From: Perna viridis | Taxonomy: Eukaryota | Direction of reading: 5' to 3' | DNA: 64,000 nucleotides | NCBI GenBank assembly: GCA_037379345.1 | Contig: CM074517.1 | Span: forward strand, 21,948,001-22,012,000 | Part shown: positions 28,228-64,000 of the stretch, piece after piece | Position numbering within the stretch: the first letter of the stretch is position 1 | How the letters are laid out: each line of letters opens with the position of its first letter | Made by a program: the position numbers and the translations under genes | Notes under the pieces: model-generated | What the model was told of the DNA's origin: nothing | Database searches by the model: none | Seen by the model: only the letters and a program-made list of their open reading frames with translations

Positions 28228-30624
28228 GTTCCGGGTTATTTGTCGCTTCATTTTCGGTTATTTAGATTTCACCACGTGGATTTCACCTTGCAGTCATCAG
28301 TGTTTTCTACCTTCAACTTTTCATGGACCATTCTTTTTCCTTCCATTTTTAAAGTACTCCTCCGTCTAAGAATCAGGCAAAATGTATATAAGTTGTGGCA
28401 CATGAAGGAAAAAATAGCACAGAGATTTTATCATTAACCAAGTATTTATACCCGTTAAATGTTTGTAAAATTTCCCTTTTTAAGATATTGATAGGTCCAA
28501 TTTAGTTGAAATTCACTTTAGAAAAATGGTGGGAAAATTTTTCCTCACCTTTTTCTTATATAAGCAGTCAAAAAAATATCTACGTCACAGATGCTTCAGG
28601 ATAAATTTAAATAACTTTTCACTTGTTTTTTAGATGTATTGAATATATTTGAGGAAAAAAGACACACTGAGAAATATGATGTGCCACCCATTACCTGATT
28701 CTTACACAGAATGGTACTTAAATAACAGCATTCACTTATCTTCCGATCTTTGGTACATATTGAACCTGTTCACTTGTTTGTACTGGCGATCATAAAAGGC
28801 CACGCATACCAAAGTATATAATTATGTTTTGATTAACTCGTGCGCATGATGATTACTATGGTAACAAAAAAGGGATAATCTGCTACAGGATGTACATCTT
28901 GAAATTCTTTGGAAATGTTCATGTCATCGAAAATTCCCCATTTGTGTTGTTACTTGATCACTACAAAATTTTAAACTAATACATATTTTCAGGCCTAATC
29001 AATGACAAGGAGAAGTTTTAGTAAATTCTGTTTGAAAAAATAACAATCTTGGCATTTTTGTCTATTTAATGTAATACAAAATTTTTCCCTTTCAAAGACA
29101 AATATGAGAAGTAAGCACAAACAGGGAGAAGTTTTTGCCCGTTTCTCCCTCTAGATTAGGCCCTGACATTTTCTCTTATATCGACAAATAATAATGTAAA
29201 GCAATTTTATGAGAAGTAACTAAAACGATTAGTAATATTCAACCAATAAGTAATTATGAAAACAAAATGTAAGGATATGATAAAAATATGAAAGAAGTAT
29301 TGAAATAATTTAAAAATATACAAATTATGGAATTCATAATTGAACTTAGAATTGAAAGCGACGTTCCAAATAGGCTAAGTTACAAATTTAATGGCTAATA
29401 AAAAAAAATGCACCATTGGACCTCGGTTAATTAAAAATACTTTGAGTCATATATAGATAAGCACGTGCCGTCTTTAAACGGGTCGTGTTAAGTTAGCTGG
29501 TGCAATTAGTGGGATAAATGCTATCAGCATTGTTTATAAAAACAAATCCTCCTCTTGTGTCAAATAACTAAGAAAACCTGCATAACATCCATCAATATTT
29601 ACCCAACACGAACTTATTTTTGTATTTCTAATTAAAGGTACAATAACAATTTCCGTCAACATTTTGGAATTTCCGTCAAAATCACTGCAATACTATGGAA
29701 ACCATGAAAATATTGCATGATGATTAGTTGTATGTAAATATTTTTGCGTAGTTAATCACTTACATTTAAGGCATTATGTTCAAAAGCAAAGCAATGTATA
29801 TTTTGTACATTACGTAAAAGGAAGGAGTTATTACGTAATGTAAATCATCTGAGGAAAATATAGCTGTATAACAAAATTCGTCAAGCTCCACACAGCGACA
29901 GTCGTTTGTTTCCTTTCTTACTATATGTACGGCTATTATTAACCCATCCAAATAAATATAAAATGATGCCCTTTATTTGATGTTTCTCAAAGAGTTGAGA
30001 AACGTTTGGACCAGAATCACGAGAGGTCCGAGAGTATAGACCTGAGCGTCAGCGCAACAGCTCAGCCGCCAGATAGTAGGGCATTTTCTGACCGAGTTCT
30101 TCGGTCATGTATCCGTAAGGTTTCGCTTAGCCACCGACAATTGTTGTTTATTTACCAACAGCGGGTACTGACAGACTCTCGACAAGGGGCGGTAGGGCGA
30201 GAACTACAAGGGACGTCCAAACCGTACAACACCCAACCAATCGTTATCATAGAAAATACAAAGAACAGTTGTTGGATAAAGAAGATAAATTCTAAGGCAA
30301 CGACGAACGGAGCCGAAACTGAAATTCGGATGTCAATGAACAAAATCTTAACAGAAACAAAGAACCAAAAAAAAAATAAGTAGCTAAAAGCAACCTTATA
30401 ATAATAAACAACTCATTGAGCAGCCTGCAATAAAAAGCGGAAAGCTTGGACCAGGAATTCTGTTGTTATCTTAAACGAAATTCATTGTTTTAAAATCGTT
30501 TACAATAGTAAAAAAAAATACCTACAAGATATGAATAAGTCGTCAATTTTATACTAAGCAAATGTCTTTTTTTTTCAATTTATGAAGCTCTGTGAATTTA
30601 CAGTTTTTCGATAATCTATTTCAG

Positions 30625-33600
30625 TATCAACTTTCTGCGATTACAGAATCATATCTACAAGCCCAGGTGACGTAGTTTTGACTGCGTCCAGTGAGTTTGG
30701 TGCTCCAATAAAGACGCAGATTCACGGTGCATCAAGAGGTGTCTTGAACTACACCCAGTTTACGTCAGCTGACGGAAAAACATACCATGGGGCATGGACA
30801 GCTGCCGTCAATAATGATAAACAGTATATCCAAGTAAATAGACATAAAGTTTTATCCTTCTCCATACTTACTTACGTGTGTTGGTTTTCTTTTTTTTACC
30901 ATATTAAAGTTGTTGCTTTTTATATAATGCTTTCAACCAATACTTCAGTAAATTGCACTGGTTGATGAAAACACATGCAAATAGAGAACCACCGAATCAG
31001 AAAGCTTGTAACAATTCAAATTGAATTATAATAAAAATAAATACCAGTATGTGTGACATCAACGATTCAACAAGGCAGTATGTATTCTTTACTAAGATAA
31101 AGAATAATTTGGCCATTTCGGGACATTATACATATATATTGCCTAATTGATACTTATAGCCTGACATTAAATTCTCTTTTAACACAGATACAACTGAAAA
31201 AGGATTACAAAATAACTGGGGTTATAACACAAGGACGGAACGGATGCTGCCAGCAGTGGGTAACCAAATACGAGGTTTTCTATGGACAAGATTGTAACAG
31301 CTTCAAACTACTGGACAGTGGCAATGGATCTGTAAGAATTATAAAGGGATATGATGTAAAACACAAATTGAATGTCGGTTGATGAAGAATATGTAGCAAA
31401 ACCTGTCTTAACCAAATCTCTTCAGAGTGAATAATTTGCCTGGTTAAGATAGTTTTTTTTTTTGGTTAATATACTAGATTTAATAATTGATTGATTGATT
31501 GATTGTTGGGGGTTTAACGTCCGAGCAGCAATATTTCAGCTATATTCAGACGAAAATGGATGATAAATGGACATGAAATGGGATGATAAAATGAAAAATG
31601 GGATGGGACACAAGGACAATGGGGTCGACAAATTTTGATTGCCACTGGAAATAGGGAGAGGTGGGTATGGTCGGGCAATTTAGCCTCCTGTGGCGGAGCC
31701 CTATGGTTCATACTCCGGGAGTATACTACAGTAGGGTTCTGTGGTGCGAGGAACGTGGCATCTTTCCCAACACAGTGCACCCCTATGGTTTGCGGTCAGG
31801 TTTTCCGTATTACAGCCTGACAACCCCAGCGTGTAACACACCAGGGGTACCCCATTCCACCACCTGGGGCACACAACCCAGTTGCTCTGTGGGCAGAGCG
31901 CCCTAGCCCCCGGCTAAGGTTCTGAGCACTATTTAGTCCCCTTTTACGACAAGCTTAGCGCTGCTGCAGACCTATTCTTTTGACACCCGGACCTGCACGG
32001 GTCTACTAGATTTAAAATACATTGAAAATGATATGAATTATTTTCCGAAGATGTCTAGTTTAGACAGGATACTGCTTTATTTAGTGTTCGATAAAGACAG
32101 GATTAACTGTATTTTGATTTTAAAATTTCTGTATAACTTACAAAACAGTCGTGTACATGTTTTTTTTTAATAATTTCTGTGTCCACTCAATAATTGTTTC
32201 TTTGGTATTTCAGAATTTTTGACATAATTGTCATTATTTGTTGTTCAGGTTGTGTATACTATAGTTTGGTATCACTTTTTTTCGGAAAAAACGTGAATCT
32301 TAGAAAATCAAAATTACATATGTACACGCAGTTTCCGCGTGATATTCTGTCCACTCACGTTATATCGGTAAATTTCCTTCCATGAAGACGCCGACAAACA
32401 TGGTTAACAGTTACAATTTAAGCTTCAATTTTCCACTCTATGAATAATGGGTGCATTATTAATTTTACGTGGTACTCGTTCAAGTAAGATTAATTGATTA
32501 TTCGTGTTAACCCTTTAACCCTTTAGCATAAGTTCTATAAATTTCAGATTTTTAAAGGCAATACGGACGAAGATACTATGGTTACAAATATGTTCCCGAT
32601 ACCTGTGACTGCGGGATGTGTTCGAATCGTTCCAAAAGAGTGGAATGGTCAGATTTCGATGAGATGTGATATCATTGGCTGTCAAGCCCTAACGACGCCT
32701 TCGACAACGACAATTTCGTCTACCACTGTGATCACTTCAACAACACCTAAGACTACAACGTCATCAAACAGACCTATTATTCAAAAGACATTCTTACCAG
32801 GTAATTTGTAGAAAAGAATTTGTCAAAATAAACAATGAAAAACCTGTCCCTTAAAACGATCAATGGAACTTTATTATACCCTTTACTGCCTCCATATATG
32901 AAAAAGTGTTTTTCATTAAACAAACCAATACTGGTATGTCAGATGTATGTCAGATATCATAGTTTGTTGTTCACATTTATCTTTTCTCTAATTGATGCAT
33001 TTTGACGTACTTTCATATCGATAGTGACCACTTTAATATAAGAATCATTCTCAGTAAATTGCAATCTCCAGGTGCCTGTAGCAGTAACCTCTTGGCTGGC
33101 AACACCAATACAACTTCTACTATCACTGCATCTAGCATCAAAGATAAGGGGAGTGTGCTGGTCAGCTATGACCCAAAGAAGGCTTTTCTATTCTCAAAAG
33201 AAGATACAAACCACTCACAAACCAGATACATGGGTGGATGGAGCCCAAGCACATCAGACAAAAACTCGTTCATACAAGTAAGTAATATCAGTCAACTCAA
33301 CAAGAGTAAAGAGAAATCATAACGTTCCAACATTTGAAGATACATATTGTGGAATGCCTTTCTAGACGAAACAGAGCTTTCTCAGGGAATTGAATATTTG
33401 CTGCTCATTTACATCAAGTTTCGAGTCAAACGCCAATCATTTTTTTCTAATGTAATACCATTTAATTATTGTACATGTTTTTTTTATATATTTACAGTCA
33501 GTGTACGTTATCAACACTCCCAATATTATTTGCTTTATTGAGTTTGGGACGATTTTGTACTTTGTTTTCTGCACGTATCTGGCGTCGTCTTTGTCTCCTG

Positions 33601-36600
33601 CTTTGACTTTCAAATTTAAAATCATAGCGTGATGTTTACGCTTTAAGAACACCGACCTTTCAAAAATGGAAATATTTGCTTAACCGTCATATTTGCTCAT
33701 ATTTATCATTGACACTAGAGCAAAATTTTCTCCACAAAAAGCCGGCTAATGAGACATTGATTTCATGCCCGATCTGAATAAATCGCACATGATCAAGACA
33801 TATGTAGTTTCCAACTCAAGAAGAAAATATTCGTGCACTCGATTTGTTTTCATAACATATTTTAATCACTTTTCATGCAACGTGTTGGCGTTTATATCTA
33901 CCGTAATAAACCACAGTTTTGACCTTAGACTATTTTCACTCATGTGCAGTGCAAATAGGTCATTTTAGTTTTATCGTTTAACCAAAAAGATATTGTACTT
34001 ATTGTACTGATTAATTATTTGTAAACAAAAAATATTCAAATTTACCAATTCACTTATTTTTCCTTACTCTTATAGTAAAAATTGAAGTAGTTTCTGGCTG
34101 ATGTTTGTAGGTCATGACCAAGCATACCAATCAAAAACTGCCGGTTAAGCGAATCATTATGGCATATGATACAAAAATAGTACTTTTTCTCCCTACTTTT
34201 AGATGAATATTTCAAACCATTACTTCAAATCATATATGTAAAATGTGACTATTTAGACATAATGGTCAATAACTTACCAACATTGCAGATAAATTGTTGT
34301 GAGAATCAGTTCTACACCCCACGAGGTTTGCATTATTGTTTTTTCCCATGCATGGAGACATCTCATCATAGATAAAATACAACACACCACCTGCTCCACT
34401 TTTATACGAAGTTAAGGCTGTTATTTTGGGAAACAACTAGTTTCTGACAAAAGAGTGAAGAACTCGATTATATTTTATTCCATTTTCTTTGTCTGTCATG
34501 ATTGCTTCTTTAAATTCTAAAGTAAAAGTGTCAAACTAAACTCTGAATAAACTGATGACCTGTCCAAAAACATTCACTTATAAACCTGTATAAACCAAGA
34601 TGCCTTGATCAATTGAATAAATTCCTTCACACTCAAAGATGTTCAGTTTAGACAAGATTCACTCTAATTGTGTTGACAATATCATTTCAATGGAACAAGT
34701 AAATTGTTATTTTCTAGATCGATGCTCAANNNNNNNNNNNNNNNNNNNNNNNNNNNNNNNNNNNNNNNNNNNNNNNNNNNNNNNNNNNNNNNNNNNNNNN
34801 NNNNNNNNNNNNNNNNNNNNNNNNNNNNNNNNNNNNNNNNNNNNNNNNNNNNNNNNNNNNNNNNNNNNNNNNNNNNNNNNNNNNNNNNNNNNNNNNNNNN
34901 NNNNNNNNNNNNNNNNNNAAAAAAAACGATTTAGCTACGCTTTGCAACCTGAATAATCTGACCCCCAAGCGTGTTTTTTACCCTTATTTCCAGGGTACAT
35001 CTTTCAAATATATAATGCCATTTTATTTTTTTTAGAACTTGAAACAAAACTATTCATTTTCATTTGATTTTGTCTGGAATGTGAGACACTTTTGTTTCTT
35101 ACATCAATTATTTTGAAAGATAGTGACTTTAAGAGATGCAAGATTCTAATAAAACTCCAACCAAGAACAGCTGATGCTCAGATATAGGAAACCTTATCAT
35201 CTCCAAAACGGTTTCTTCATAAAATATATCAAGACGAGACGAGAAAGGAAACCATGTACCAAATAAATTCCACAAATAATTTCTCAAACATGTGTAAATT
35301 CTTTAAGCAGTCTGTTGTCATTTCCTTTTGTATATTCAGTTAACTACGACTATCATAACAGTTTTCTAGAAAATATTAATTTACAAGTTATTTGAGGAAA
35401 GAAAAAAAAGACTCAATCACGTGGTGCACGCTTTAAAACCTTAAAACAGGTTATTTTCAAATGTACATCTAGGGTATTGAGTATTCTTTAATTAATTTAT
35501 TATAGTGTTAAACATGTAACGAGCGGATCATCAATGGACAAAGACGTCACAGTCATAAAATCAAATACAGTTTATGCTATGAGAGAGTATTACTTATGAA
35601 ATTAAAATTACTTTTAATATCTCTTGCAATTACTCGTAAGTATTGAAACTTTGCTGTACCCTTGTCGTCTAAGATTCTGATATATTTTTGTCTTCCCATT
35701 GGTCGTGCGATTGTTTTATCATTTTTTTTAAAGTCACTTTTGAGAACAATTGAATCTTAATTATTATTCAGTCTTGAAGTGGTGTATTTATATTTTCTGA
35801 CAGAGTGAGTTTTGTTTTCTGAAGAAGAAGGTGTATCGTAAACGAGATATTTTCCTGCAGCTTATAGAGGACTTATATTTTTCTCTTCTTTTCTTGATTT
35901 GACTTTTCCTCCCATTTGCTTTGGTAATGACCCTTAAAAACAATCAACCAAACTCACAAACAAGCAAAAACAAAAAAATAAAAACCATTCGACAGCAGCA
36001 TTATCATCACCAAAAAAGTAAAACAATAACGAATCTAGTATAATTGAGAAGGTTATTATAAAAAAATCTTTCAACAACAAAATATTTCAAAATGTCTATG
36101 ATGAAATGCATAAAATCTATATACGAATTCAATTGGTGCAAAATAAAATTAGGGATGAAATCTCTATTTAGGTAGAATTTGCAGACCCCACTGTTGTACG
36201 TGGTATCGTAACTCAAGGCAAAAATGGATGCTGTGATAAGTGGGTCAAAAAATATAAAGTTTTCTACAGCGCTGACTGTAAAACATGGACGGCTTCGGGT
36301 GGTGGTGCAGGTCAGGTAAGTTATACAGCTGTTATAAAGAATTTGTTCTAATAAAAGATGTTACTAAATATATTTCCAACTGATTCAAGATTAAGACAGA
36401 TGTAAAAAGTTAAAACAACAAAAAGCTTATTGAAAAGAAATACAACTTAAGAAAGAAAATACGATATTCATGTCACTGTACATATAGATAATTCAGACCA
36501 TCATCAATCATTTGACACAGTCAAATATTCATTTACCACATTTTTGCGAGCAATGACTAAAATTTAAACCGTTGGTAATTAGAATCTTAAGCATTAAATG

Positions 36601-39600
36601 GCATGTACATACCAATCACTAATTTTTTATATAGTGTAAAATCTAAACAAGTGGATATTCTACCGTAAAAAAGCATATTAGTTGACTGCAGCCCAGCTGA
36701 TTAGAGTGATTTAAGCAGGTAGACCTAGGGTAAGGGACATAACTCATGAAATCAGTGATATGTTTGTATTATATTCAATTTCACCAAAGCCTCTCAAGCT
36801 TTCGTTTGAAGCAGAATAAAATGAATCCAAGTTAATTAGATGCTTATATACGATTTATGTAAAATACTGAATACAAACGTTCCAGTAATTTTTAAGAGTT
36901 GTGTCCCTTACCGTAGGTCTATCTCCTTAAACAATATGGAATCATAAAAGAATAAATGGTTAAAATATCGGCAAAACATATCCAAACGTCAGCAGTGGGA
37001 TGATTTCAAATACGTCAAAATCTAAAAACATGGCCTAAACGTGAGCACATGAAACATAGATGATCTACATACACATTGTCGCGAACCGAATAAATACTGA
37101 ACATAAGGGAAACAAGACGGCACACAATACAAACTAAAAAGCTAGCAATATGAACTCCAGCAAAAAACCGGTAGTGACATCAGGTGCTCTGAATGTGTAT
37201 AAATTTGAACACATTTAGTTTTTGTGTCTTCAGATATTTTCTGCGAATACTGATAAAGATACACCAAAAATCCAGATTCTTTTCTGTCCTCGTGCAGTCA
37301 AATGTATAAGAATTCAGCCAACAGAATGGAACAATGAGATAGGCATGCGATTCGAGTTAATTGGTTGTCCTATCGCAAAAGGCGGAGTCCCGGGTTTGAA
37401 TGTTTCTTATAACAACCAAGTGAATCATGCAACACAGCCGCTTTTGACTTCACCTCCGACAACCCCATCTACTACAGCAAAGCATGTTTCAGGCGCTAGC
37501 ACAGGTATTTAATATCATAATCAGAATCAGTTAATATACATACTTGTTTTGAATACTTGTTGAATACAACTAATATTTTTGATATGAACTTCCTACATAT
37601 TTGATTTTAATGCTGCTGGTAAGAGGTTACTCCTCCACACGTGTACAGCTTATCAAAAGTTACAATATATAAAACTGGTATATTTTGTATTTTAATGGAA
37701 ATGTCAACTGCATTTCTGACAAATGTTTTCTGAGAATTGTTTTTCGAACGACGTTGGTTGTTTTTTTTTTTCAACTTTAATTACCGAAAACGACATGTTT
37801 GTACTAGCTTTTTAAGTTACAATACACTCACGCTAAAATATTTGACTTAATAAAAAAAAAAGTTGTTGCAAAATGGACATTAGAATCACTTTAATGTTGA
37901 ATCATCCTATTCAGTATAAGATATAAAATACATACAGATTTAATAGTTTTCGTTCAGCAAACGTATAAAGGTATTAACAAAACAATTAAAAAATGTATAT
38001 AGTTCGAAATACATCATTTTTCAAAAGATGAGTCACGACTTATGCATTATTATGTCAACTCTACCTGAAAGTGAGAGATTCATGATAATTGTTGCATTAC
38101 TATTTTTATGGGAAGACATTTTTGTTGTCCAGTCCGTCTATTCGTTACACTATTGTATGAGATAGGACATGAATGAAATGTTGTAGTGCATATTACCAGG
38201 AAATTATGATAAACAGAATTTTGTTGGCGTTATACCCCTTTTAACTTCCAAACGTGGGATACATGCGTTTTTGAAGGCAAAATAAAACTTCAATTCATCA
38301 CTGCTGTTGTTTCAAGTGATAACCTATTAATATAAAACTAGCAAAAATAAGAAAAGTTGCATGAAACGGTTTATACAAATATTGTATATCAATCACTATG
38401 ATTCGACACAAATTTTAACTTTTATAACTGATTAATAAAAGATCAAATTTTGAAATTAACAAGATAATGACAGATTATGTTTTCAAAGACATATTCATTT
38501 ATTCTTTATCGAGGACAAAACTGCAATCAGAGTCTTTTTGCGCACCTTCCATACAAAAGCAGTAAAATTGTAATGACTTCAAGCACTGAACTTAAGCAAA
38601 GTGATCCAAGTCATGATTATAGTGCCGATAGAGGGCGCCTTCATGCCACTGACACGCTAGGAGTAAATAAACAACTTCATGGTGGTTGGTCAGCAGCAAC
38701 TCTTGATACGAACCAGTTTTTACAAGTATGTTTATTAGTATCATAAACCTTGCAGAAAAAAAAAACACATCACGGAATATTGACGGGGGTAGGGGTAGAC
38801 GATTTCTTCGGAACAAAATAATAATTTTCACTACTTTAGGGGTTAATTTTTTTCACATACATTGAATCAACTTGATAATTATATGTATAATTCAATTCAG
38901 TGTGATTAGAAAGATAATAGCATATGGTTTTTCTCTCAATTTAAAAAAAAATATTTATTTTCAAAAAATTTTGAGTCAAAATATTTATTTCAAAATTATT
39001 CATACTCCACCACCCTCAAAATCAATTGGTCACCTCATTATGCTCCGTTCTTACATTGTGACATTTGGTTATCGCTTCTATGGCTGTGAAAGTTACCTCC
39101 AAACTTATTTGTTAATTAAATTATAACCCAATTATCCTTGAGCTTTATAAACCGTTTTCTCTTAAAATCGACACAGGATTATAAAAAATGAACATTTAAG
39201 AAGAAATGGCAGGAGCCTAATTACTGATCAAATAATTTCTGAACCACTGCCAAGAGATCAAATAATTCATTACATTTCGACATAGACGTCAACTGCGAGT
39301 CGTTTTATACTTGAGTTTGTAGAAATAAATAAGTGCTCGCTAATATTTAGCAGATTCTTTTGAAATAATTAAGGCTTATGTTCATCAATAGAAACTAAAA
39401 TCAAACCCAATACGTATTTTAAAATATTCAAGATAACAATACTATTATTTAATAAAATTACTTTTTTGACGGCAAACTTATGATAATATAATAAAATCCT
39501 ATCAATATAAAATCAAAATAATTGATGATATTTTCTCTTGCTTATATGCTTAATGGATAACCACATATATTTGCAAATTTGATAAGGAGTTATGAATTTG

Positions 39601-42600
39601 ATTTGCTACACAGTTACAATTGGGCTACATCAAGCACCAAAACATTTATTCATCGGTGCACCTGGGTCCATCCTACTAGTTTTTAGTGGAGTCCGGATTG
39701 CTCTTTTAGTTTATTTTCTTATACGTTTTATTTTGGTTATATTAAATAACATATTTGTGTTCTCCCTATATAGTCTTTTATCCTTGGAATATATTTTTGT
39801 CTACCGTACGAAACTTGGCTCCTTGATAACTCTTTTCGTGGCCACTTTTTAACAGGAGAAAAATTATTGTCTTAGTTTAAGTTTACTCTATAGACCCTAA
39901 CGTGATAATCACGGGGAAGTCAGTGAACATGCTCAGATAACACTTCCACGAGGAAAAGTCTATTGTTCACTCCAAGTCCTACCTCGCGGAAATATATGTC
40001 ACGCATGCTCATCGAATATCCCCAGTTACCACAAAAGGGCTGATTGGTTACATTTATATCCCCTTTTTCTGTTTCTGTATTGCACTTTCATATAATATTT
40101 GTTTACATAACTTTAACTAAACGTAGACTGCATAACATTGATAATTTCAGGTGAAATTACCACATATCTCTACAGTTACTGGCATAATAACTCAAGGAAA
40201 AGATGGACCGGGTAAGGAATGGGTAACAAAATACAGAGTGTTATACAGCGATGATTGCAAGCAGTGGCACATGGTTAATCCTGTCGGTGGAGGGGTTAGT
40301 GTTAGTCTAGCAGATAGAGAGAAAATGTGATTCAAAAGATCAAAATAATTACTTGTTGTCATAGATACAATTAAGATCTAAAGCTACATAACTCTGTTTA
40401 TTGCAAACACGATCTCTCTTTGATGTGCATACCTAAATTAATATCCATTTTAAGGGAACTAAATTCTGAAACTATAATTATGTAGAGAGATTAGAAGTTT
40501 CTGATTATCGATTTAATGTCTTATGAAACTCGAGAAGGAACTACGTTATGTTTGTTAGATCCTGTAATTCCAGAACTACTTGGATGATAAAAGTACAATG
40601 TACTTTATAAGAAAGGAAGAAGTCATCCAAACGTTAACCTCTGAATGAATTCGTAACACTATTTAGTCATTTTCTGACTGAATGGAATGATTCCAAATAT
40701 ATAAATTGTAGATATATATTTTCATATTCTTTTGTGAATGTTTAAGGCATTAGTTTTAAGCAATAAGAAACCTACATACAAAACTGAAGTTTGTCATATT
40801 TTACGCTTAGTAACAACAACACTGAATTAATTCAAAATGACTCTCAACGAATATGCTATTTTTATTTCTCGAATAATTGAAATGAAGCCCTTAATTGTGT
40901 CCAGGTTTATTTTACAAAGTTGATGCATGTCTTCTGCGATAGAGTACAATTCTATATTTATTACTACAGTATATTCCTTGTTCTTTAGAAAGATCCATAA
41001 TAGTTCAAGAACCTTATGGATCAGTAGATCACTTTACAGGATGTGTTTTTCAGTCTGTAACTAGTCCGTTTACGGCTACCAAGTATCTAATATAAGAAGT
41101 TCCGAACTGATCAAATTTAGGGAGTAGTCCAAATGAATAGCAAAAAGGAAACTTCGTATAACAAATGGCATTATCAGGGTGAAAACAGCAAATTTCATAC
41201 CTAATCTTTGGGAAGTTAGGGAGATATATAAAGTTACTCTTCTTGGTTTTGTATACATAGAGATGAGACTATTTACATTTCATGTGGCCAAAATCCTCGA
41301 GTCGTCGATATCTTCTCAATGCATCCGTATATGCCAGAGACTGTACTTTTATTTGTCACTATTGTACAATAGGTTTACGTCTTTCATTTATTGTGATATC
41401 AGGACTTCAGTCTTTCATGAAAACGAATAATTTGGTCAAGTTATGTCCTTTGATAAAATATATATTTGTTCCAGAGCTTCAGAGGAAATTCTGATGAGTC
41501 AACTGAAGTGCTAAACATGTTCAGCCGTGAGGTGCAAGCTTTGTGTATCAAGATAAATCCTTCAGTATGGAACAACCACATATCTCTCAGAATGGACTTA
41601 ATAGGTTGCTTTAGTTTAAACAGCCACATGCCATCTGTTTCAAATTTAGCTATACCTACTACACAAGCATTCAAAAATCCGACGTTACCAGCTTCGACTG
41701 TCAGTAAATCTGCATCATCCACCAAACAACAAGTTTCATATTGTCATAATTCTTTGATTAATAACAAAACACTTGGTTCAGAAGTTAACTTGACTGCATC
41801 AAGTACTTTTCACAATCCAACTATACAATCGATGCCGGAAAGAGCACTTCTGGATACTAGTAAAATATTTCTTCAACAAGGTACAATGCTTGGTGGATGG
41901 TCACCTGCTGGAAATGGCCAAAACTACATTCAGGTATGAAATTGTTTTGTTTTATCTCAAATAGGATTGTTTTTGTTTTTGCTTCCTCTCGAATTTGCCT
42001 TGTTGAGAAAATGGCTGGCTTTATATGCCCCGGAAAATGGTATGCTCTATGTTTTGTCATATATCTACAATATATCTACAATATCTATACTTGCTACTCC
42101 AAGTTGTCAAAATTGTTCACACATAGTTTAAAGTGTCTAACAGATGAATAATTTGAACAAATGTTGTCTATTAATTTACAGACTCACCACCAACCTGCTT
42201 TCAATTACATCACGATCAATTTTGTCTTCTCAGGCGTCGTTTTCTGACGTGCAGATGATTCAAAGTGTAATTACCCAAGGAATGGACAAATCTCTACAAT
42301 GGGTTACAAAGTTTTCTATTTACTACAGTGAAGATTGTATTAACTGGCAACAGCTTAGAAACCCTAAGGTAATGTTATGTTAAACTCAAATCCAATGAAT
42401 GCTATCATATGTGCAAGGGAAATCTTTTGATACAGGATTCGAATGAAAGAGATCCAGAGATAACAACTAAAAGAAAATAGACATACACAACAAAGAACAT
42501 GGAAAAACAAACTTAACACACTCATAGAAACTAACCGGGCTCCACTTAAATGTGAGCACTGATATGGTGCACTGGTATGATTAGCGTTCCCTGTTTCTTT

Positions 42601-45600
42601 TTCTTTTTTTTTTTGAGATCAGTTGCTCGTAAAATGTCACATCCAGAGTAAACAAGAGGAAAACTAAGCAAAATTAACCATTCGGTTAAAATGCAGACGG
42701 ACCATAACGACCTACGATGATTATGACCATATAACTTTTGTAGTGGTGACTTTAATCTTGTATTTAAAACACAACGCTGTTCCAGAAGACATGTTTTAAA
42801 GAACCTTACATGTTTTGAAAATTAAGCGTATATTCTACAAGCTTTGGCATAAGGTATGCTGTAGACTTGTTTCAACGAGTAACTTCTTACGTCTTATCAG
42901 TATTTGAACAGAATACTTAGGAGGTTCAAATACAAAGTCCTTTAATGATATGTTAAATCGTTTCCCAATATTCATTACGGGAAAAGAACCTCAATGTCAT
43001 AGCGATATTTCGAATTTGTACTAAAATAAATAAATCGGTAAATAATATGTTACAACTGGTTCCGGTAAGACAGCTCTAGCTACCGGAATGGTGAATATTT
43101 ACCGGATCATATTATCATAAAACATAACAATCACATAAATATTGCACATTTTGGTATGTTGTACACACGTTTCAAGGGGTAACTTTTCATCAGGAGCCTT
43201 TTTATACAAATACTTGAGTCGTACTCCATCTAAGAATCATGCAAAATATTATTCATGGTTGGAAAGCCTACATATTTTTTATTTTTTGATAAATTTGTTT
43301 AAAATGCTTAAGTAAACAGATAGTAACATGTGGTATTTCATATAACCCCTGTTCATGAGAGATACCTAATTTATATAGAATGTACTGTAGAATTCAAAAT
43401 TAAGGGAGATATGCTGTAAGTGACAATAAAATACAATAGAAAAATATTTAGCCTTTTTGGAAGTATGCTAAGACTGCTACTTGATAAGTTACAGTTTCAG
43501 GTTCGCAGTTGGAATCCAAATTCAGAAAGGAAAGAATTCATTGCGTTTGTCGTATTGTTTAGTCATGTTTTTTTTCCTGTCCATTGATCTCTAAAGTAAG
43601 AAGATATGAACCTGACTTTATAGTGTCTCACCAACCTTTATCGCATGTTATAACATATGTCATTGCTTAAATTTAGCAAATAAATTCTCACAGGAGAGCA
43701 TGACAAATAAATCCTGTATCTGTTAGTTGCTGTCAACGCAATATGTGAACTTTAACGGTTTTGATATTTAACATGTAAATTTAGATTCTTAGATCAAATC
43801 CATATGTTGTTGTTAAGTACGAAATACCTTAGTCATAATTGTTTGTAAAGAAATTGTAAGGTATCAGTCTTGTATTGAATACTCTTTAGCGGATATACGT
43901 CAAAATATGGAGGCTAAAATATAGTGCACATCTTATTTATAATTTTTTTTATTTGCCTTTTTCTACCTTTTGCATTTTTCATCAAAAGTACATGGTAAAT
44001 AACAAGCTTTGACATAAACACTTGTTTTTCAGGATAAACAGTATGTTCAGGAGAAATAATGCTTCAGACATAAGGTCTATTTTATGAACTCAAATAAAGA
44101 TTGAAAGTAGGAAATATCTGTTTCCTTTTCTATTTTGAGCAAGATTACTTTTAACATATCATTACGTTTGTTGAAGCATGTGGCAAATATGTCTGGATAA
44201 AAAAAACACATGTAATCTGAAAATTTCGTAAGAAATTTACGACAGTTGCATGGAGACTTAGTGACACTAAGTTCCGATACAACGTTCTTAAATTTCTCAC
44301 GAAATTTTCATTACAAACTATAATAAAGTATCTCAACGTACTTCTCAAAGTTTTTTTTCTACTAGCTGTCGCCTAATTAAGTCTGGATTAATTGAAAAAC
44401 CATACATTCTGAAACACTATAACTATAACTGAAAAGATCCAAATGATTTAAATGCAGTGTCTATAAACACAGCTTGTTGATTGCATATGTCAACTCGACG
44501 GAAAAAAGTTTATATCCTTTGCATTATTGCATTGCATTATTGCCTATGTTATCACCCTGAGACATTTTTATTTCGAACCGAGGGACGATATAAACTGAGG
44601 ACTGGAAAATATTAAGATTACTTTTAACATATGTCTGGATAAAAAAAATCTGTAATCTGAAAATGGCGTATTCCACACATTTTCAATACCAGTAATTTAA
44701 AGGCTAGTAGATAGAGTGAGTGGTCTATTTGATCTTACCGCCTTAAATTATCTATCTCGTGCTTGTGTCGTGATACTTAAAACATAATCAGCAATTTGTC
44801 CTGACAATTCATGTTAAATTGACTGTTTCGTCGCCTATATACAGAAAAGGGTCTCACTATGTTTGATGTCAGTAAATCTCACGAGAGAGACGGTGCCATG
44901 TTATATACCCTGCTTAACCTTTTTATGCCTTGAGGGGAACATAACATACTTTTATTAGCATATGCAAAATTGGTTGTTTTTTTTATAATATATGTCATAA
45001 ATACAGAGATGTATTACTTAGTTACAGTTATTGAGTTGTAATGTTGAGTAAATCATTTCCAAAAAAATCCATATTCGAATTATACTGGTCTGTATTTTTA
45101 ACACCAAAGAAGCGAAATATTTCATACAATATTTGATTAAAAGAAGTTGAATTATTTCGCCCTTTTAGATCTTTTAAAATGTTAATGTAACTAAATGTAT
45201 TCTTTTGCAGGAATTTCAGGCCAACAACGATGACAATACTAAAGTCCATAATAAATTAGGTTGCCCGATTTTTGCAAAGTGCATTAGAATTTATCCGACA
45301 GGTTTTCATAACTATACAGGGCTTCGATTTGATCTAATTGGATGTAACATCAAAGGTAGACTTCTTGACAGTGATATCATTTACGACTCCGGAAGCGATT
45401 TTAACTAGAAACAATCACGGTTATCGTTGTTCATTGAACTATCATAACGTATACAATTATGCTCAATCTATTAGTGGATATAAAAGAGGCATTCAAAGCT
45501 GCGGAACAAAAACTGAAAACAAAAGAATTGAAGATAAAACATATACCAACAAGAAAAAACAAACAACATTTATAAACTTAACAAAAATAAATGTAAAAGA

Positions 45601-48600
45601 CTAAATAATACCAAAGAACACAGAACATATATGTTGTATGGGAAAGCTTTCTCTCTTCTCACAAACAATTATAGATATTACATAGATACATTAATTGATT
45701 TATATAATTCAGATATTCAGAAATAATGGACTCCAGAGGACAAGCTGATAAGACATTACACATACGGAAAACACTAAAGTAGATAAAAACAAGCACAAAC
45801 AAAATGAAAAGAGTAAAACAAAAAATACAAATACACAGAAAACCAAAGAAGAGTACTCCGATTTTTCGTTAGTAATGATTGGTCACTTATTTTCACTGGT
45901 TATTCGTTTTAAATCGGAATGAGCTTACGATAAAATAATTTTCATAGAGAGAATTTAATAAATAAACAGCAATCCTAACAATTTTTCCAAGGGGAAATTG
46001 GTAGGCCCATCAGTTAAAAAACCAATTGCAAGACAAACGCACAATATGTTTCTGTCATTTTAATGCTACAGGCCATGTTTGCTGTTAGTATCAATACAAT
46101 TTATTTTAAAATAACGTTTAATATATCAGTGTAATGCGTACATACCAAAATTTGTTCGGCATGAAATGGTATTCAAAACTTGTTTTGTTTGATGCTTTTG
46201 TCTTAAATTTCAGATAACAAGAATTCCGCGATTGGCTTAAAAAATCCTTCAACAACAGTACCGACGTTATCATCTGTGTCAACCACACAAAATTCAATTT
46301 CATCGACAATATCACCTTCACCTTCACCGATAAGCGTTTCAACTAAAACTACACAGGCAACATCGTCTGTACCTTTTTCACCGACAAAGTCAACACCGAA
46401 AACGTCAATGACATCATCAATAGTGACATCGTCAACAACAAAAGCAACTAAATTTTTCACCTCTACAGTGACAACGCCATCTTCAACAATATCAGTGACA
46501 ACTCCAACAACATCAAAAACAACACTTTCAACAACAAAAACTCCTACTCATATTACTCACAACGTACTTCCGACTGGCAAAGCATCAAACTATAATTCTA
46601 AGGATCCTATAGATTGCAAAAGAGCTTTACTAATGTTTACATGTTTACATCCTATAGTAAGAAGGCATTGTTTTTATTCCTGTAATCCAAAACAAGCAGT
46701 TATCTCAGCAATTTTTAGTAGCACTTCATCACCTGTGTCAGCTAGTTCCTCTATTACTCAGTCAAGGGGGCAAGTCAATAGTGTACACTATTCTAGTGCT
46801 ATGTCTTTGGCATCTTCGCAAACACCGTCTATCGTATCGTCAGTATTGACACAGTATTCTCCTTTAGTGTCTTCTCAACAGTTAGTAATTCAGTCTCATA
46901 CATCGCATGGTTTTTCAACACCTTTGTCACCGTCTTATTCTACAATCGCTATGAAATCATACTCACCCAGTCAATCTACTTCACTACCCGTAAAACCGTC
47001 AGCCAGTGCACCTACAACGCACCAATCTACTATCACATTGTCAGCGACCCCATCTTCTCTAATTCAAACGTCATCATCTATACCGAGTATGACTTCTTCT
47101 ACTATGATCGTAACTACACCATTGCATCATTCCCATATAGTCTTACCTACTGGACAAGCATCAATATACAGTCCTCTTGATCCTTTAGACTGTAAACGTT
47201 CACTGTTGAAGTTTTCATGTAGCTTATCAATTATTGCCAAGCACTGCCCAAACTCTTGTTCTAAATCTTCAAGCATCGTCATCTCATATTCTCCTAGTTC
47301 AAGCGTGGTAGCTTCAGCTCAAAGCTCAAAACCTACAAACAGTATCAGTAATGTTGCTTCTAGTTCGAGTATACACACAAGTTCCAAACCTTTCAATAGT
47401 ATAAGCTCTAGTTTATTTGTACCAGTTCCTACTTCAAGCTTGTATACTTCAAACATGCTTAGCCGTAGTGTTTTTAGTACAAATATAAAATCTGGTAGTC
47501 CATATTTCACACAAACACACCCTTTGTCATCTTCTTCTACTTTTTCAGCCCAGCTTCTGTATATGTCGTCAGACAGACTGTCAAGATTAACTGCCCAAAC
47601 CTTAACTTCAAACACAAACATACCTTCATTATCAATTAATTCAATTTCTACTTTGAACCAACAGCTATCTTCTACAAAACCTTTGATTTCACAGTTTTTC
47701 AGCTCTTCGCCTCACCAAAATACGGCATTATATTCGCGTCAAGCAGCATCTCAACTTTCGAATGTTCCAATAATCTCGAGTTCTTCCAATGCCCAGCCAA
47801 AAAGTAGCCATATCTCTTTATCTACTGTTTTGTCAACAAATGGGCCTGGAAGCATACTATCCTCTATCAGCAAGCCTCTATCTTCGCTTGCGCAACTAAA
47901 AGGTATATCCGTGTCTTATTCACTGAACTCTTTGCCTATTCAGACTACTGTTAGCAGCTCCAGTGTCTCATCTAATGTCATTTCTTCATCGCTATCAAAA
48001 CCACGTTTGCCTTCATTTAGTTTCACTTCATCCAACGTTCAATCTGTATCATCAATTCTATCTTCCTCTCAAGTTGCTTCTACGAATAGCCTACCACCAA
48101 CAACGTTTGGTGTGCCGTCTTCCTTAAGTAATTTGTTGTTGTCGAAAAACATTCAAACCTCACAAGTGGCCAGTTCTATGTCTTCGTCGTCTTACTCACA
48201 AAGAAATTTGATTACCAGTACCACATTGTCAACGCAATCTGGAGTTTTGGGATCACAATCATTCCACGGTATTTCACAAATATCTGGATTAGCGTCGCCT
48301 TCGTCAAGCGCTTCTGTCTCTACCCTTGTATCTGTTAGCTCTGATATTATCTCTTCTTTGTTGAATAGTTATTCAAATATATTACCAAGCTATGCAGTTT
48401 CAACAAATAGCGTGTCCGCTTCGACAATCAACACGCCATACATCAACACAAGGTCTTCTAAATCGTCACTAGTATCTGATCTCTCATCACCACTTATTTC
48501 AAATTTATCAACACTTCATTCTATTGCTCCCTCAACATATCCTACTTTATCACCCTCTGGAAAAAATCAGCCTTTCTTCTCAAGTTCTGCTAATGGGATG

Positions 48601-50160
48601 CTTAGTTCCCCCTCTATCAAACCGTCCACTTCTTCGCAAATTCAAAACGTACAATCTTCAATATTTAGTAGTTTAATTCCTAGCTCTGATGCTATGAACA
48701 GTGCAATTTCACCACATTTCAGCCAATCTTCTGTAATTCTACAGTCTTCAAATCCTTCAACAAGCTTGCTGTCTCTAAGTTCTGTTATCTCTACTACTAA
48801 CCTTATATCAAATTTCCAATTGCCAACGACACTTTATAGTTACACGTCTGCTCCATCGACTTCAAGTACAAGTTCTTCTGGAATGAATAGCAAGTTGTTA
48901 TCATCTTCGTTTTTCTCTTTGGTAAGTTCATCTTCAGTGCATTCATCTATGCAAATGCATGTGTCTTCTATGCAAAAGATATCAATTAAGCCCCTTTTTA
49001 ATTCTGCTGTTGCTACGACTCAAGTTTCTACTGATATTAGTCCTTCAACCACTGCCACTCCATTTCCATCAATTTTGACAACTCAACTTTCCAATGTTAT
49101 ATCTTCTAAACCATCACTACTCCCCATTGCTTTATCTACTGATTCATATATTTCTTTATATCCTAGTCTTCAGCCTTCACAAAACCTTTATCTGTCGTCA
49201 GCACAACCTGGAATATCATCCTTATTTAGCAGCTTAACAAACTCAAGTCAATTTCCGTACACCTTGTCATTTTCATCTCACCTAGTCTCTCACTCTGCAC
49301 CACCAAGTTCACATTCCTCTTCAATTAGTATTGCATCGAACAGCCTACTTACACCACCATCTAAGTCGTCTTTTTCTCACCCACTAAGTACTGGAATACC
49401 TTCTTCAACGGACTCCCTGACTTCCTTGTATGGATCAATTCTATCAACCAAACCAGCAGCTTATGCTTCTACCCCCCAACATATACCTCTGTCTGCTGCT
49501 GTACAACAACCCAGTGGTCAGCTGTCTGTTACTTGTGTTCCTATCTCGTCAATGTATGCGACACCATCAAGAAGCCTTATGACAGATAGTTTGCTTTTGA
49601 TGGGCATATCAAGTGCCAGTATGTCAATGAGTATAGTACAAACACCCAGTAGCAATGTACAGTTTCAAACAAACTCCCCTTCAGTAAGTGGGATTTCATC
49701 GACTATGCTTGGATCATCACTGATTATAGCAAGTTCTTGCTATACTTTTACAGTTTTTCCAACAAGCGGTGTTAACGTCTACTTGAACTCTTCTCAAACT
49801 CTCTTAACATCAGCGTTACCAACCAGCTTTACTTCAGCAAATCAGATGTCAACATCAGTGGGAAATTTGGTTTCTAGTCCTTTTCCTACCAGACAAGTAA
49901 CTTCAATGCAAACATCTTCGCTTCCTTCACAGACTACAACTACAAGATTGCCTGTGACACATGTAGTTATTCCAACCGGTGTGGCTGGAATTTATGACAA
50001 CAGGGATCCAGTAGATTGTAGACGTTCTCTCACAATGTTTTCATGTACCAATCCAATTGTTGCAAGACATTGTCATTATTCATGCGCATCCCATCCCGCC
50101 AGTCGACCAGACATCTTTGCTGTTCCAAGAGGAAGTAGTGCTGGGAAAGGTAAAAAATAA
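30625..50160 (+). CDS. Large, probably secreted protein: four discoidin (F5/8 type C) domains, Ser/Thr-rich mucin-like region and three four-Cys ShKT-like modules (~2,100 aa)
   Basis: Exons 30625-30833, 31188-31331, 32548-32800, 33072-33277, 36172-36315, 37234-37504, 38514-38725, 40151-40294, 41475-41933, 42234-42368, 45211-45355, 46214-50149/50160, with consistent phases. Each domain shows F5/8C hallmarks: TASS, G(G/A)W, (Y/F)(I/L)Q, (I/V)TQG, WVxK(Y/F), FxxNxD, RIxPxxW, MRxxLIGC. The CDS either stops at 50160 or splices to 50549-50574 (ANRDLVNG*). Confidence 0.88.
31393..32111. mobile_element. Old MITE (AAACCTGTC...GACAGGATTAACTGTA termini) interrupted by the 31484-32003 retroposon
   Basis: Imperfect inverted termini at ~31393-31410 and ~32092-32111; the two halves rejoin at the duplicated TACTAGATTTAA. 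Confidence 0.5.
31484..32003 (-). mobile_element. 520-bp non-coding retroposon (SINE-like) with (AATC)n tail and 12-bp TSD
   Basis: TSD TACTAGATTTAA at 31472-31483 and 32004-32015. The - strand 3' end reads ATAGCTGAAATATTGCTGCTCGGACGTTAAACCCCCAACAATCAATCAATC. GC content is much higher than the flanks and several hairpins are present. Confidence 0.85.
34730..34918. other. Assembly gap (run of N) inside an intron of the discoidin gene
   Basis: 189 consecutive N. Confidence 0.99.
39652..39840 (+). mobile_element. Diverged Penelope-like 3'-end fragment
   Basis: CGGTGCACCTGGGTCCAT...AGTTTTTAGTGGAGTCCG...CTTGGCTCCTTGATAACTCTTT is the reverse complement of the 1206-1440 repeat. Confidence 0.65.
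42455..42780 (-). mobile_element. Diverged Penelope-like 3'-end fragment including the RT C-terminus
   Basis: ACATACACAACAAAGAACAT... and GACCATATAACTTTTGTAGTGGTGACTTTAATCTTGTA align with 53010-53360. Confidence 0.6.
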
Positions 50161-52324
50161 AAAGACAGATGTATGTAATCAAAGCAATTCTGACAACGAT
50201 TTTATTTCTCTTCCGTTTATATGATCTAGCAAGAATGCGAACGTCAACTAGCATATTACATTAAAACAAATCAAATTCACATTAAAAGATATTTACTCAA
50301 TATTTACCGATTATAATTATCTTTCAAAAACCCTTAAGTTTGTTTATGTGGCTGATTTTTAATATTTAACAACTTTTTATTACAATTGTTCACCATACAC
50401 TACATACTACATGGCGAAGATGGACTTTATCTATATGTTACTTTCAAGCGGATAAAAAAAAAGAAACACCTTATGATTCTTCATTTATTAATATCTTATG
50501 TTCCGCTCTGGTTTTCAACTGTTATTTTGTTTCAACATTTATTTTCAGCCAACAGAGATCTTGTAAATGGATGATTAAGTGCAAGTGAATAGTTAGGTTG
50601 TGAAAATGTAAATGGAGATTGAACTAGAAACATTTCAATCTGTGATGTAAAAATTCTAGAAATATACGAATCCACATATTTACTTGTTAAGGCTTCCTTT
50701 TTTGTTTTTTCAACATATGTGAAAATATATGATACCCTCGATTTGCACTTTACTGTTTATGAACATATATCTCTACAGTAAATAATAAAAAAATATATTT
50801 ATTGTTTATATCTAGAGACACCCCTGTTCGTTACTACAACACAGTTGTTGGTGAAACACGTCCAAGAAAAACTGATTAAAAATGTTGAATCTTTGCGCAA
50901 TTCTTACATAAAAACCAGTCTTTACTTTAAAAAAAAATACATTGATGATGTGATATGTATATTACAGTAGTTCTCGCAAATGAAATCACGCTTAGAGGCA
51001 TATTGTCAAAGTGTCAAAGTTCCCATAGATATCACAAACGTAATAATCACAAGCCTGTTATACTCGGGAAAATGCGTACAACTGCAAATATTATTCAGAT
51101 TCATTTTAATGATTATTTATCAAAAATATATTACGGTTGCATTATCTCACTGTTTATCATGTTACTTCCTTTGAGAAAATATATCTTCTCTTAACTACAA
51201 ATGACCCGTTGAGTGGTTATATTGCAATAGTTACAAAACTGGAAATAAATAATTCATTCAGTTATATAACAACACATCGCTAAAAATAAATATGCGAATT
51301 TTAGACATATAAAGGTCAATTATTAAATAATACGAAAAGAAGTATTACTCTTATGTTGTTTTTTAAATAACACCTTATTTCCGTACAAAATAATTTAAGC
51401 AACAAATTGTATTTATTTTATTTGTTTTATTTTTTCATTATAATTTGTGTACCATATTTACTGTCCTTCGAAAACACATATCAGTAAAAAATCGATAAAT
51501 ACACACACATATATATAGTGTTCGGTAATTTTGTTATTACTCTTATTTACCCTTACCTTGAAATATCATAAAATGTTTCTTCGAATAACTGCCACCGTTA
51601 ACACAATATTATAAATGTTTAAACAGTTTGGCTCTTTGTTTGTTAATTGCTTCTGTAATGACCTTCGCAGCAAAGTAAACAAAGGACAAAGCCTCTTTTA
51701 GTGTATGAGGACCAAATCAAATGTCTTTTATGTTTCATGGCCTTTCTGTCCTCTGACGTATGTTTGAGACTACATCATGGAACGTGCTTTATCAGTGATA
51801 TATTTTGATAAGAAACTAATTTAATTAAAGCATGAATATGTTCCGAATATCGTTACCTACTACAATACATTTGTAGCAAAGAAAATTAACAACAACATAA
51901 CAATGAACAACAACACACAAACAAAAACAAAACAAAATAAAATGAAAGAAACAAACATGATAAAGAATTTAAAATTGTAGTGATCTTAAGTGCCATTTCA
52001 GACACTACCACGTGTAGAGGTGATTTTTGAAGTAAAAAAAGAACATTCGATGTTTGTTCGTTCTAAGTATGCTATATTTTACTAAACGATAGCACTTTCG
52101 GTAAATATTTATTTATTTTAGAACGCAATCTTTTCATCTTCCACTTAAATCAGGAAAGATAACTCTTGCAAAGTGACAACTGTATGTATGATCTATATAA
52201 TTTTAATCTAAAATGCATATTTACCGAATGAAAAATAAGGCTGGACGTCTGGAGTGTGACTTTTTCTGAATAGAAACAAAAGTGAATTTCATGAAACTCC
52301 ACGAAAAATCCATTTTCATTTTTC

Positions 52325-52932: not shown

Positions 52933-53880
52933 AAAGAGTAATCAAGGGAACTAAGGTTATAGCGGTAATCAAAAGAATGTAATCCAGAGCAAAAATCAGA
53001 CATGGAAAACAAACATACACAACAAAGAACATATAGTAACTAAAATCATACACTACAAAGAACATAGAGTAACTAAAATCATACATACAAAGTAACAAAA
53101 GTAAATGAGCAACTCGGACTCCACTAAAAACTGTAAGTATGGACCAGGTGCACCGGTAGGGTTAGAGTCCCCTGCTCTTCTAGAAACACCCGCCGAGTTT
53201 CTCATAAAAAGTAAAGTTCGGGGTAGACGAAAGAGGAAAGGAAAACTATGACCCGTTGAACAAATCACTTTTCATGGAGCAGATGGATATACAGTAACGA
53301 TCCACGAGTTCATGATGACGACCATGAAACTTCTGTAGTGATGACTTCAATCTTGTAGCAACATAACCTTACTAAAGAAGCCTATTTGTTAGAATTCTAG
53401 CGCGATAACAAAAAAGTATGCGTAGTCCCGGCAAGCTCTGGCATAACGTATGAGTTTTGATATGAACACTCCATACGCAGGTGCGAAAGGGATATTGTCA
53501 CAAATGAAAGGATAATTGATAATTTTGAATGAAAAGTCATCACGTTTGTCGTAAAGTTTTGCCAAAAGTTTTCCTTTTCCTTTACCATCGATTTCTAAGT
53601 GTAGGTCAATATATAAGGCTGACTTCACAGTGTCTGTAGTATCCTTTATCTCAAGTTCTTTGGGGTCGATACGATGTATTAAATCCCCAAAATTAGGATT
53701 GTTTAAAGATAACATGTCATCTATATAGCGGAAACAGAGATTAAAGGATCTAGCTAAAGGATATTCTTTATTTTGGATCAGATCAGCTATAAAGGCAGCC
53801 TCATAAGAGTGAAGGAATAGGTCAGCAAGAGGAGCACAATTTGTTCCCATTGGAATGCCGACCGTTTGTTTAAAAATTCT
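52933..53880 (-). mobile_element. 5'-truncated Penelope-like retroelement (RT C-terminal half plus 3' UTR)
   Basis: QTVGIPMGTNCAPLADLFL...FRYIDD...LYDKRDDF...PAYGVFISKLIRYARAC, continuing after a frameshift as LKSSLQKFHGRHHELVDRY...* and ending at 53246. No GIY-YIG endonuclease follows the RT. Confidence 0.88.
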
Positions 53881-63758: not shown

Positions 63759-64000
63759 GTAAGTTGACAAAGCCTTCACAAAGTTTTTTAATTTTCAAGT
63801 AAACATGACTTGCTCGCTTTTTTTCAAAATAGTTAATTATACCCCTACTACACTTCTAAAGTGGCGGTATGTAGTAATAGTTTTGAATTTAACTGCAAAT
63901 TATACATTGCCCAAGTTATCATTACCAAAATATCTCTTTGTTTAAAAGGGAAAATTTTGATAAATCTCATTTTAACATAAGTTAACAACTACGATAATGC

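Follow-up and report, generated by a model that had tools for sequence, protein, structure and literature searches.

The subject of this study is a small four-cysteine module that occurs three times in one long exon of the bivalve Perna viridis. The window, meaning the whole stretch of DNA that was analyzed, comprises 64,000 nucleotides (nt) of contig CM074517.1 (assembly GCA_037379345.1, positions 21,948,001 to 22,012,000, forward strand). The exon belongs to a gene whose product of about 2,000 amino acids (aa) is composed of five discoidin domains, a mucin-like stalk of about 1,300 aa and the three modules, and the coordinates of these features are collected in Table 1. The stalk exon has a length of 3,936 nt, or 1,312 codons, of which 372 encode Ser, 142 Thr and 102 Pro. 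Only 14 Cys residues are encoded by this exon, 12 of them within the modules, and one open frame (46276-50160) covers all three copies. This long Pro/Thr/Ser-rich region is mucin-like in composition and is predicted to be O-glycosylated.

The stalk exon is transcribed and spliced. The joints 45355->46214 and 50149->50549, both of the GT..AG type, are present in contigs of three studies (X1, X4 and X7). These contigs end at 50740-50748, and the 3' untranslated region reaches at least 50748. The raw-read RNA run X21, from which 0 reads were placed, is no test of expression. Upstream of the stalk, residues 9-809 of the Mytilus edulis protein P0013 (XP_071153470.1, 2,343 aa, partial), a region of five discoidin domains, are colinear with 30567-45355 at 46-71% identity by tblastn. 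When six window exon open reading frames (ORFs) were taken singly, three matched the discoidin profile PF00754 (E 2.7e-7, 2.8e-4 and 8.9e-3), one exceeding the cut-off (31.2 vs 28.2 bits) and the two others falling below it. One of the introns that separate discoidin exons contains a run of N, an assembly gap or masked sequence, at approximately 34.7-34.9 kb. The protein ends 29 residues after module 3, and a transmembrane segment is absent from this end. A hydrophobic N-terminal leader, judged by eye, is carried by the orthologue P0013, which suggests that the encoded protein is secreted. The start codon and signal peptide of the window gene were not found within the 30.3-30.7 kb searched; the region where the signal peptide is expected, 30500-30680 (+), has a T-run, and none of its three frames is free of stop codons.

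Table 1 Coordinates of the discoidin-mucin gene and of the three four-Cys modules within the window.
Feature	Position	Strand	Description and basis
Module 1	46555..46683	+	43 aa, four Cys (C-x8-C-x8-C-x3-C), N-terminal HxVLPTGxAxxY lead; translation
Module 2	47131..47259	+	43 aa, four Cys; translation
Module 3	49957..50085	+	43 aa, four Cys; translation
Ser/Thr/Pro-rich mucin-like stalk exon, holding the three modules	46214..50149	+	AG 46212-13, GT 50150-51; spliced contigs; both flanking introns phase 1
Upstream exons, five discoidin (F5/8 type C) domains	30567..45355	+	tblastn of P0013 residues 1-860; joint 45355->46214
Discoidin exon blocks, approximate	30567-30836, 31185-31331, 32551-32802, 33068-33280, 36031-36318, 37231-37407	+	tblastn
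Discoidin exon blocks, approximate, continued	38513-38734, 40145-40321, 41478-41933, 42231-42368, 45208-45355	+	tblastn
Last coding exon	50549..50574	+	two bases completing a split codon, N-R-D-L-V-N-G, TGA 50572-50574; own translation

A sequence-only reading, made from the letters of the window before any database was searched, had described three copies of exactly 129 nt sharing one consensus. The translations and invariant columns agree with this description exactly. Each window copy consists of a lead, H-x-V-[LI]-P-T-G-x-A-x-x-Y, and a core with the Cys pattern C-x8-C-x8-C-x3-C. Among the three copies, 20 of the 43 columns are invariant (H2, V4, P6, T7, G8, A10, Y13, D17, P18, D20, C21, R23, L25, F28, C30, I34, H38, C39, S42 and C43). 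Pairwise, the amino-acid identity is 56-60% and the nucleotide identity 57-61%; the proportion of synonymous differences (pS) is 0.77-0.91, which is saturated, and that of nonsynonymous differences (pN) is 0.28-0.29. Because synonymous change is saturated and pN stays at about 0.28, the module copies are old and under purifying selection.

A profile built from the three copies was then used for searching. In the 723-Mb genome, no further copy at E<0.1 was found besides the three of the window; their own E-values (8.0e-28, 1.4e-25 and 1.4e-27 for modules 1, 2 and 3) are circular, the profile having been built from the same copies. Two extra rows, at E 0.28 and 0.78, both contain stop codons. 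A regular-expression match at 21878-21946 (+) in the window has a similar four-Cys spacing and none of the other module residues, and was taken as chance.

The same profile was scored against 1.84 billion cluster representatives, with a threshold of E<=0.001. Relatives in other species were matched at E 6.8e-19 to 1e-6. Twelve proteins passed the threshold and eight of them are true members: the window's own product, P0002 of Mytilus galloprovincialis, P0003 of M. californianus, P0005 of M. edulis, P0011 of Pecten maximus, and P0004, P0006 and P0008. P0016 of Mizuhopecten yessoensis was added by a word search from P0011. With module 3 inside the long ORF as query, a length-filtered homologue search returned the window's own protein only. 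The other four proteins (P0007, P0009, P0010 and P0012) were rejected; 12-22 of the 43 profile positions were matched, many times over, in translated tandem repeats. Three of them, P0007, P0009 and P0012, are long proteins of approximately 59-aa tandem repeats, apparently translated repeat DNA.

The comparison with Mytilus further verifies that the motif is conserved and the Ser-rich surroundings are not, as had been noticed from the window sequence. BLASTP of the stalk exon against three Mytilus proteins yielded 17 high-scoring segment pairs (E<=1e-3); every one of them overlaps a module, and exon residues 357-1214, the middle of the stalk with roughly 860 residues, are free of them. The window modules correspond in order to Mytilus modules 1, 2 and 3: module 1 is orthologous to module 1 of P0013 (60.6% identity over 71 aa), and module 2 is colinear with module 2 of P0002 and P0003. 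P0003 contains two modules and P0002 contains four, the last of which (residues 1623-1655, C-terminal) is divergent: the HxVLPTG lead is missing, and a Trp stands between its first and second Cys. No fourth module of this kind was found downstream of window module 3 by regular expression or tblastn, and the transcript ends after a coding exon of 26 nt. The scallop proteins P0011 and P0016 have a single discoidin domain each, joined by a Pro/Thr linker to a single module. The architecture of discoidin, PT/ST linker and module is kept in P0005, P0013, P0011 and P0016, and PF00754 is matched at E 1.2e-78 in four stretches of P0005 and at E 8.2e-23 in P0011. The modules are thus kept in position between Perna and Mytilus, and they accompany discoidin domains out to the scallops.

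The columns that stay invariant across the family are Y, D, P, all four Cys and the Ser just in front of the last one. Every complete copy has four Cys in all species examined; P0011, shortened by its gene model, shows three. The HxVLPTG lead is present in the three window copies, and in most copies from mytilids and from P0004, P0006 and P0008, and it is absent from P0011, P0016 and the fourth Mytilus module. In the scallop modules, A-x-x-Y and D-P-x-D-C are retained along with the remainder of the core. From the lead, A-x-x-Y and D-P are the only parts conserved family-wide. It had been proposed that HxVLPTGxAxxY replaces the bond between Cys1 and Cys6 of ShKT, but the absence of HxVLPTG in some members, together with its modeling as a low-confidence coil (see below), shows that it is no general replacement of this bond. 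The database names of the relatives are "uncharacterized", "hypothetical" or derived from the discoidin portion; "F5/8 type C domain-containing", "inactive carboxypeptidase-like X2" and "neuropilin-2-like" occur among them, and the module appears in none. No publication was found that names any of six homologue accessions or loci or describes the protein or module, in a literature search that did not cover proteome supplementary tables.

At the level of profile comparison, Crisp (PF08562) is the only Pfam family that matches the module. The register is constant, from profile position 24/25 to 48/53 of 55. The window ORF is matched at E 5.4e-4 (20.9 bits), the three 63-aa pieces cut around the modules at E 0.011-0.038 (15.0-16.7 bits), and 4 of 7 homologues at E 0.005-0.19 (12.8-17.7 bits). 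The consensus of the ShK domains from the same genome has Cys spacings of x6, x8, x11, x3 and x2, and the module has x8, x3 and the C-x-x-S-C end in common with it. Both the Cys spacing and the Crisp register fit Cys2-Cys5 of a six-Cys ShK-like framework, with four Cys found in the complete copies where ShKT has six. A CAP domain was found neither in the window ORF nor in the homologues, and the hinge is absent, the match covering profile positions 24-53 only. The PF08562 scan of the genome found no canonical Crisp domains. NCBIfam matches on the ORF were rejected as noise (E 0.013-0.058, far below the cut-offs).

The structure of module 3 was predicted with AlphaFold2. A 51-aa model reached a mean predicted local distance difference test score (pLDDT) of 76.1, with the HxVLPTG lead as coil at 57-74. 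The 37-aa core model (49984-50094) reached a pLDDT of 88.0, with 30 of 37 residues at 90 or above and three short helices at 10-18, 24-29 and 31-35. In a Foldseek search of 350,542 PDB chains, three matches at E<=10 were returned for each model, and all six are snake-venom CRISPs: natrin three times for the 51-aa model, and natrin, stecrisp and zinc-bound natrin for the core model. The query-normalized template modeling (TM) scores are 0.41-0.64 overall and 0.60-0.64 for the core model. A search of 48,161 chains independent of Foldseek returned one chain at Z>=2 for the core model, pseudechetoxin residues 172-207, which is again a CRISP tail. Features in the ESM Atlas, where scores below 0.9 are leads only, gave a PLAC cluster first (0.84) and ShK clusters at 0.76-0.82 for window module 3, and the ten best named matches for the scallop module were all ShK (0.85). 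The structure rows for the scallop module include PLAC/ADAMTS and CAP+Crisp models, with TM 0.51-0.54 (0.54 for CAP+Crisp).

The reading that we favor, with a probability of approximately 55%, is that the modules are two-disulfide mini-domains of the ShK-like class, nearest to the CRISP CRD/ICR, in the stalk of a secreted bivalve discoidin protein. The disulfides of ShKT pair 1-6, 2-4 and 3-5. In the module, the positions of Cys2-Cys5 would be kept and Cys1 and Cys6 would be missing, the position of ICR Cys1 presumably falling near the invariant Tyr. Each module would then form three short helices pinned by two disulfides, predicted to join the first Cys to the third and the second to the fourth, as Cys2-4 and Cys3-5 do in ShKT. 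Within the superfamily, the module lies nearer to the CRISP-ICR subtype than to ShK proper. In the whole protein, the N-terminal half consists of five discoidin lectin-type domains, which may act as glycan-binding heads, and the heavily O-glycosylatable stalk, interrupted by the modules, would give hydration and bulk. As compact, protease-resistant knobs, the modules may mediate interactions or set the spacing within a lectin-mucin that belongs to mucus or some other secretion. They are not expected to block channels.

Several results weigh against this reading. With the ShK profile PF01549 (cut-off 20.9 bits), neither the window ORF nor any of the three 63-aa pieces was matched at E<=10, and the seven homologues were not matched at E<=1. 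Of its matches in the genome, at least 149 with 150 of 209 candidates scored, none falls at the module locus C7:21994555-21998085. When nine modules were aligned by hhalign with 24 ShK domains from the same genome, the probability was 2.8% (E 0.016) over 11 columns, which cover the C-x-x-S-C end only. Crisp stays below its cut-off of 27 bits on the window and homologues, and in the genome scan two junk frames interrupted by stops reach 17.6-18.1 bits, as high as the modules. The three-copy profile matched 0 PDB sequences at E<=10. On the structural side, each AlphaFold2 model is based on an alignment of 9 rows. The Foldseek matches are weak (E 2.6-8.3, probability 0.10-0.25), and VIA-align placed the model on natrin 182/185-217 (root-mean-square deviation 2.2-3.0 A, 32-33 residues) at Z 2.3-3.2, a range flagged as possibly just a common arrangement. 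The 51-aa model matched no chain at Z>=2 in the Foldseek-independent search, and structures of the ShK and BgK peptides are absent among the PDB fold matches. PLAC heads both the ESM features of the window module and the structure rows of the scallop module. Finally, the lectin-mucin function is wholly inferred, by analogy with Toxocara mucins and discoidin-repeat proteins.

All links to ShK and CRISP are thus individually weak. No link reaches significance, and therefore homology of the module to these domains is plausible, not shown. The argument lies in the agreement between methods, each a weak line taken singly, which point to one superfamily with no competitor but PLAC. The sequence-only reading had likened the module to ShKT without the Cys1-Cys6 bond. 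Its fit to Cys2-Cys5 is upheld by the spacing and the Crisp register; nothing is significant, and CRISP-ICR is closer than ShKT itself. The fold comparison that it had suggested has a similar outcome, as only CRISP CRD/ICR tails were matched, weakly, and the ShK/BgK peptides were not returned. It was right that the standard ShK profile misses the module, and no Pfam family covers it at a curated cut-off, with Crisp below 27 bits and ShK giving no match.

The strongest alternative, which we consider a real but less probable one, is that an independent, lineage-specific two-disulfide mini-domain of three helices was born beside discoidin in pteriomorph bivalves and converged on the ICR/ShK shape. 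Every sequence link is sub-threshold, no six-Cys member is found, and the family is tiny and restricted, with 8 true members among 1.84 billion cluster representatives; these points speak for such an origin. Small helical disulfide domains also converge easily, and the low Z may reflect a common arrangement. However, five methods lead to the same superfamily and to nothing else. Crisp is the sole Pfam match, and both fold searches, with six of six Foldseek rows and the sole chain of 48,161, returned CRISP tails. The ESM features are ShK for two divergent modules, and the Cys spacing and terminal C-x-x-S-C fit the framework. The genome offers abundant raw material in its at least 149 ShK matches, and molluscan ShKT domains that have lost Cys1 and Cys6 are known (PMC6409789).

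Much less probable is a derivation from, or closest kinship to, the PLAC domain (PF08686) of ADAMTS/papilin-type proteins. The PLAC domain has six Cys. It resembles the module as a small C-terminal Cys-rich element of secreted matrix proteins and as an ESM neighbor: a PLAC cluster is the first feature for window module 3, and for the scallop module the two leading structure rows are ADAMTS-like models that bear PLAC (TM 0.51-0.52). The difference is that the PLAC profile of Pfam gives no match on the module, at E<=10 for the window and at E<=1 for the seven homologues, and no PLAC-containing chain appears in the PDB fold searches. The ESM scores stay below 0.9, and a TM of about 0.5 over 35 residues means little.

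It is similarly improbable, and slightly more so, that the modules are bioactive peptides, such as channel modulators or antimicrobials, cut from a mucin-like precursor. Ion channels can be targets of ShK-type and CRISP-ICR domains (PMC7150914 and PMC6409789), and basic clusters follow the module in P0004 and P0016. However, no consistent dibasic sites were found beside the three window modules, the protein that contains the modules has lectin domains and a length of about 2,000 aa, and the comparable SXC domains of Toxocara mucins are described as non-toxic (PMC7333891). A chance or non-coding pattern, or a pseudogene, to which nothing more than the low-complexity context points, can be dismissed in view of the 1,312-codon open exon, the spliced contigs of three studies, the purifying selection and the orthologues in four named bivalve species and Mizuhopecten.

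Returning to the ShK-like reading, the nearest known system is the CRISP CRD/ICR (PF08562; natrin, stecrisp and pseudechetoxin). As described in PMC7150914, a CRISP carries a hinge and an ICR after its CAP/PR-1 domain, and positions 183-221 form a CRD/ICR with three disulfides, a few short helices and the tertiary structure of the sea-anemone toxins ShTx and BgK. The module shares a length of approximately 35-40 residues, few short helices and the terminal C-x3-C, and with either model this was the sole PDB family to be matched (natrin 182-217 and pseudechetoxin 172-207). In contrast, the CRISP domain has six Cys, or ten with the hinge, and the module has four; the module also lacks a hinge or a preceding CAP domain and is placed in a mucin stalk after discoidin domains.

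The ShKT/SXC domain (PF01549) shares with the module eight residues between Cys2 and Cys3, three between Cys4 and Cys5, and the C-x-x-[ST]-C ending of the ShK consensus from the same genome. The two differ between Cys3 and Cys4 (x8 in the module vs x11), and the module has neither the Trp nor the Met that is conserved in the local ShK consensus. In the gastropod Cumia reticulata, some ShKT repeats of multiShKL and M12-ShK proteins "lacked Cys1 and Cys6", in the words of PMC6409789, which is the same Cys pair as is missing here. In Cumia, such aberrant repeats stand singly among canonical ones; here, the four-Cys state is found in every complete copy of every species. The idea of a ShKT domain without Cys1 and Cys6 is therefore already published, and what differs is the fixed four-Cys state, the failure of standard profiles to detect the module and the five-discoidin mucin host. 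The proposal of a candidate new domain variant accordingly holds in that the module is unannotated and lineage-restricted; it does not hold as a first case of a ShKT lacking Cys1 and Cys6 (PMC6409789).

The protein as a whole may be compared with two other systems. The Toxocara canis mucins Tc-MUC-1 to -4 have a Ser/Thr-rich core flanked by SXC/ShKT domains without toxin function, as cited in PMC7333891. They resemble the Perna protein as secreted mucin cores punctuated by small ShK-like disulfide domains that lack a toxin dyad, and differ in being short nematode proteins without discoidin whose domains have six Cys and are found by standard profiles. Tandem F5/8C domains that bind galactose and GlcNAc-bearing molecules occur in secreted adhesive or cohesive proteins of echinoderms, namely sea-urchin Nectin, with six discoidin domains, and sea-star Sfp1, which act in secretions jointly with mucin-like proteins (PMC7037938). 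These echinoderm proteins, likened to the Perna protein by description, differ in having no long mucin stalk or four-Cys modules in the same chain.

A stronger version of the ShK-like reading can be put forward tentatively, and we hold it to be possible and no better than that. It states that the family is a stable two-disulfide derivative of ShK/ICR with the four-Cys state fixed before the mussel-scallop split. It would be obligatorily partnered with discoidin, its invariant Tyr and Asp-Pro lead would replace the Cys1-Cys6 staple, and it would merit its own Pfam entry as a distinct domain family and as the module that defines an undescribed class of bivalve lectin-mucins. If so, it would be a natural experiment on a dispensable ShK disulfide.

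Through the module reading, an unannotated, conserved part of a large secreted bivalve protein receives a name and a fold that can be tested. If the reading is true, the ShK scaffold can do without the Cys1-Cys6 bond permanently and throughout a family, which bears on scaffold engineering and, since the standard ShK models miss the module, on profile design. A mollusc example would also be added to the nematode design of a mucin with ShK-like knobs, and the discoidin-mucin chimera would be a candidate for a part in bivalve mucus, adhesion or particle capture. No long-standing question is opened by this reading; the concept of a ShKT domain without Cys1 and Cys6 is already in print.

The genome scan also revealed a large ShKT expansion that is separate from the four-Cys family. 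With 150 of 209 candidates scored, at least 149 ShK matches were obtained, many of which lie in dense tandem arrays of six-Cys domains of the canonical type, for example at C11:19.76-19.84 Mb, C13:17.42-17.44 Mb and C2:18.84-18.86 Mb.

Downstream of the mucin gene, a 153-aa open frame at 53389-53850 (-) resembles, by eye, a fragment of a mobile-element protein, with no Pfam match at E<=0.01. Further downstream, two frames match PF00001 below its cut-off, 59370-59564 (+) at E 1e-3 over profile positions 2-46 and 63393-63767 (+) at E 1.3e-5 over profile positions 103-187. These frames are probably exons of a neighboring G protein-coupled receptor gene.

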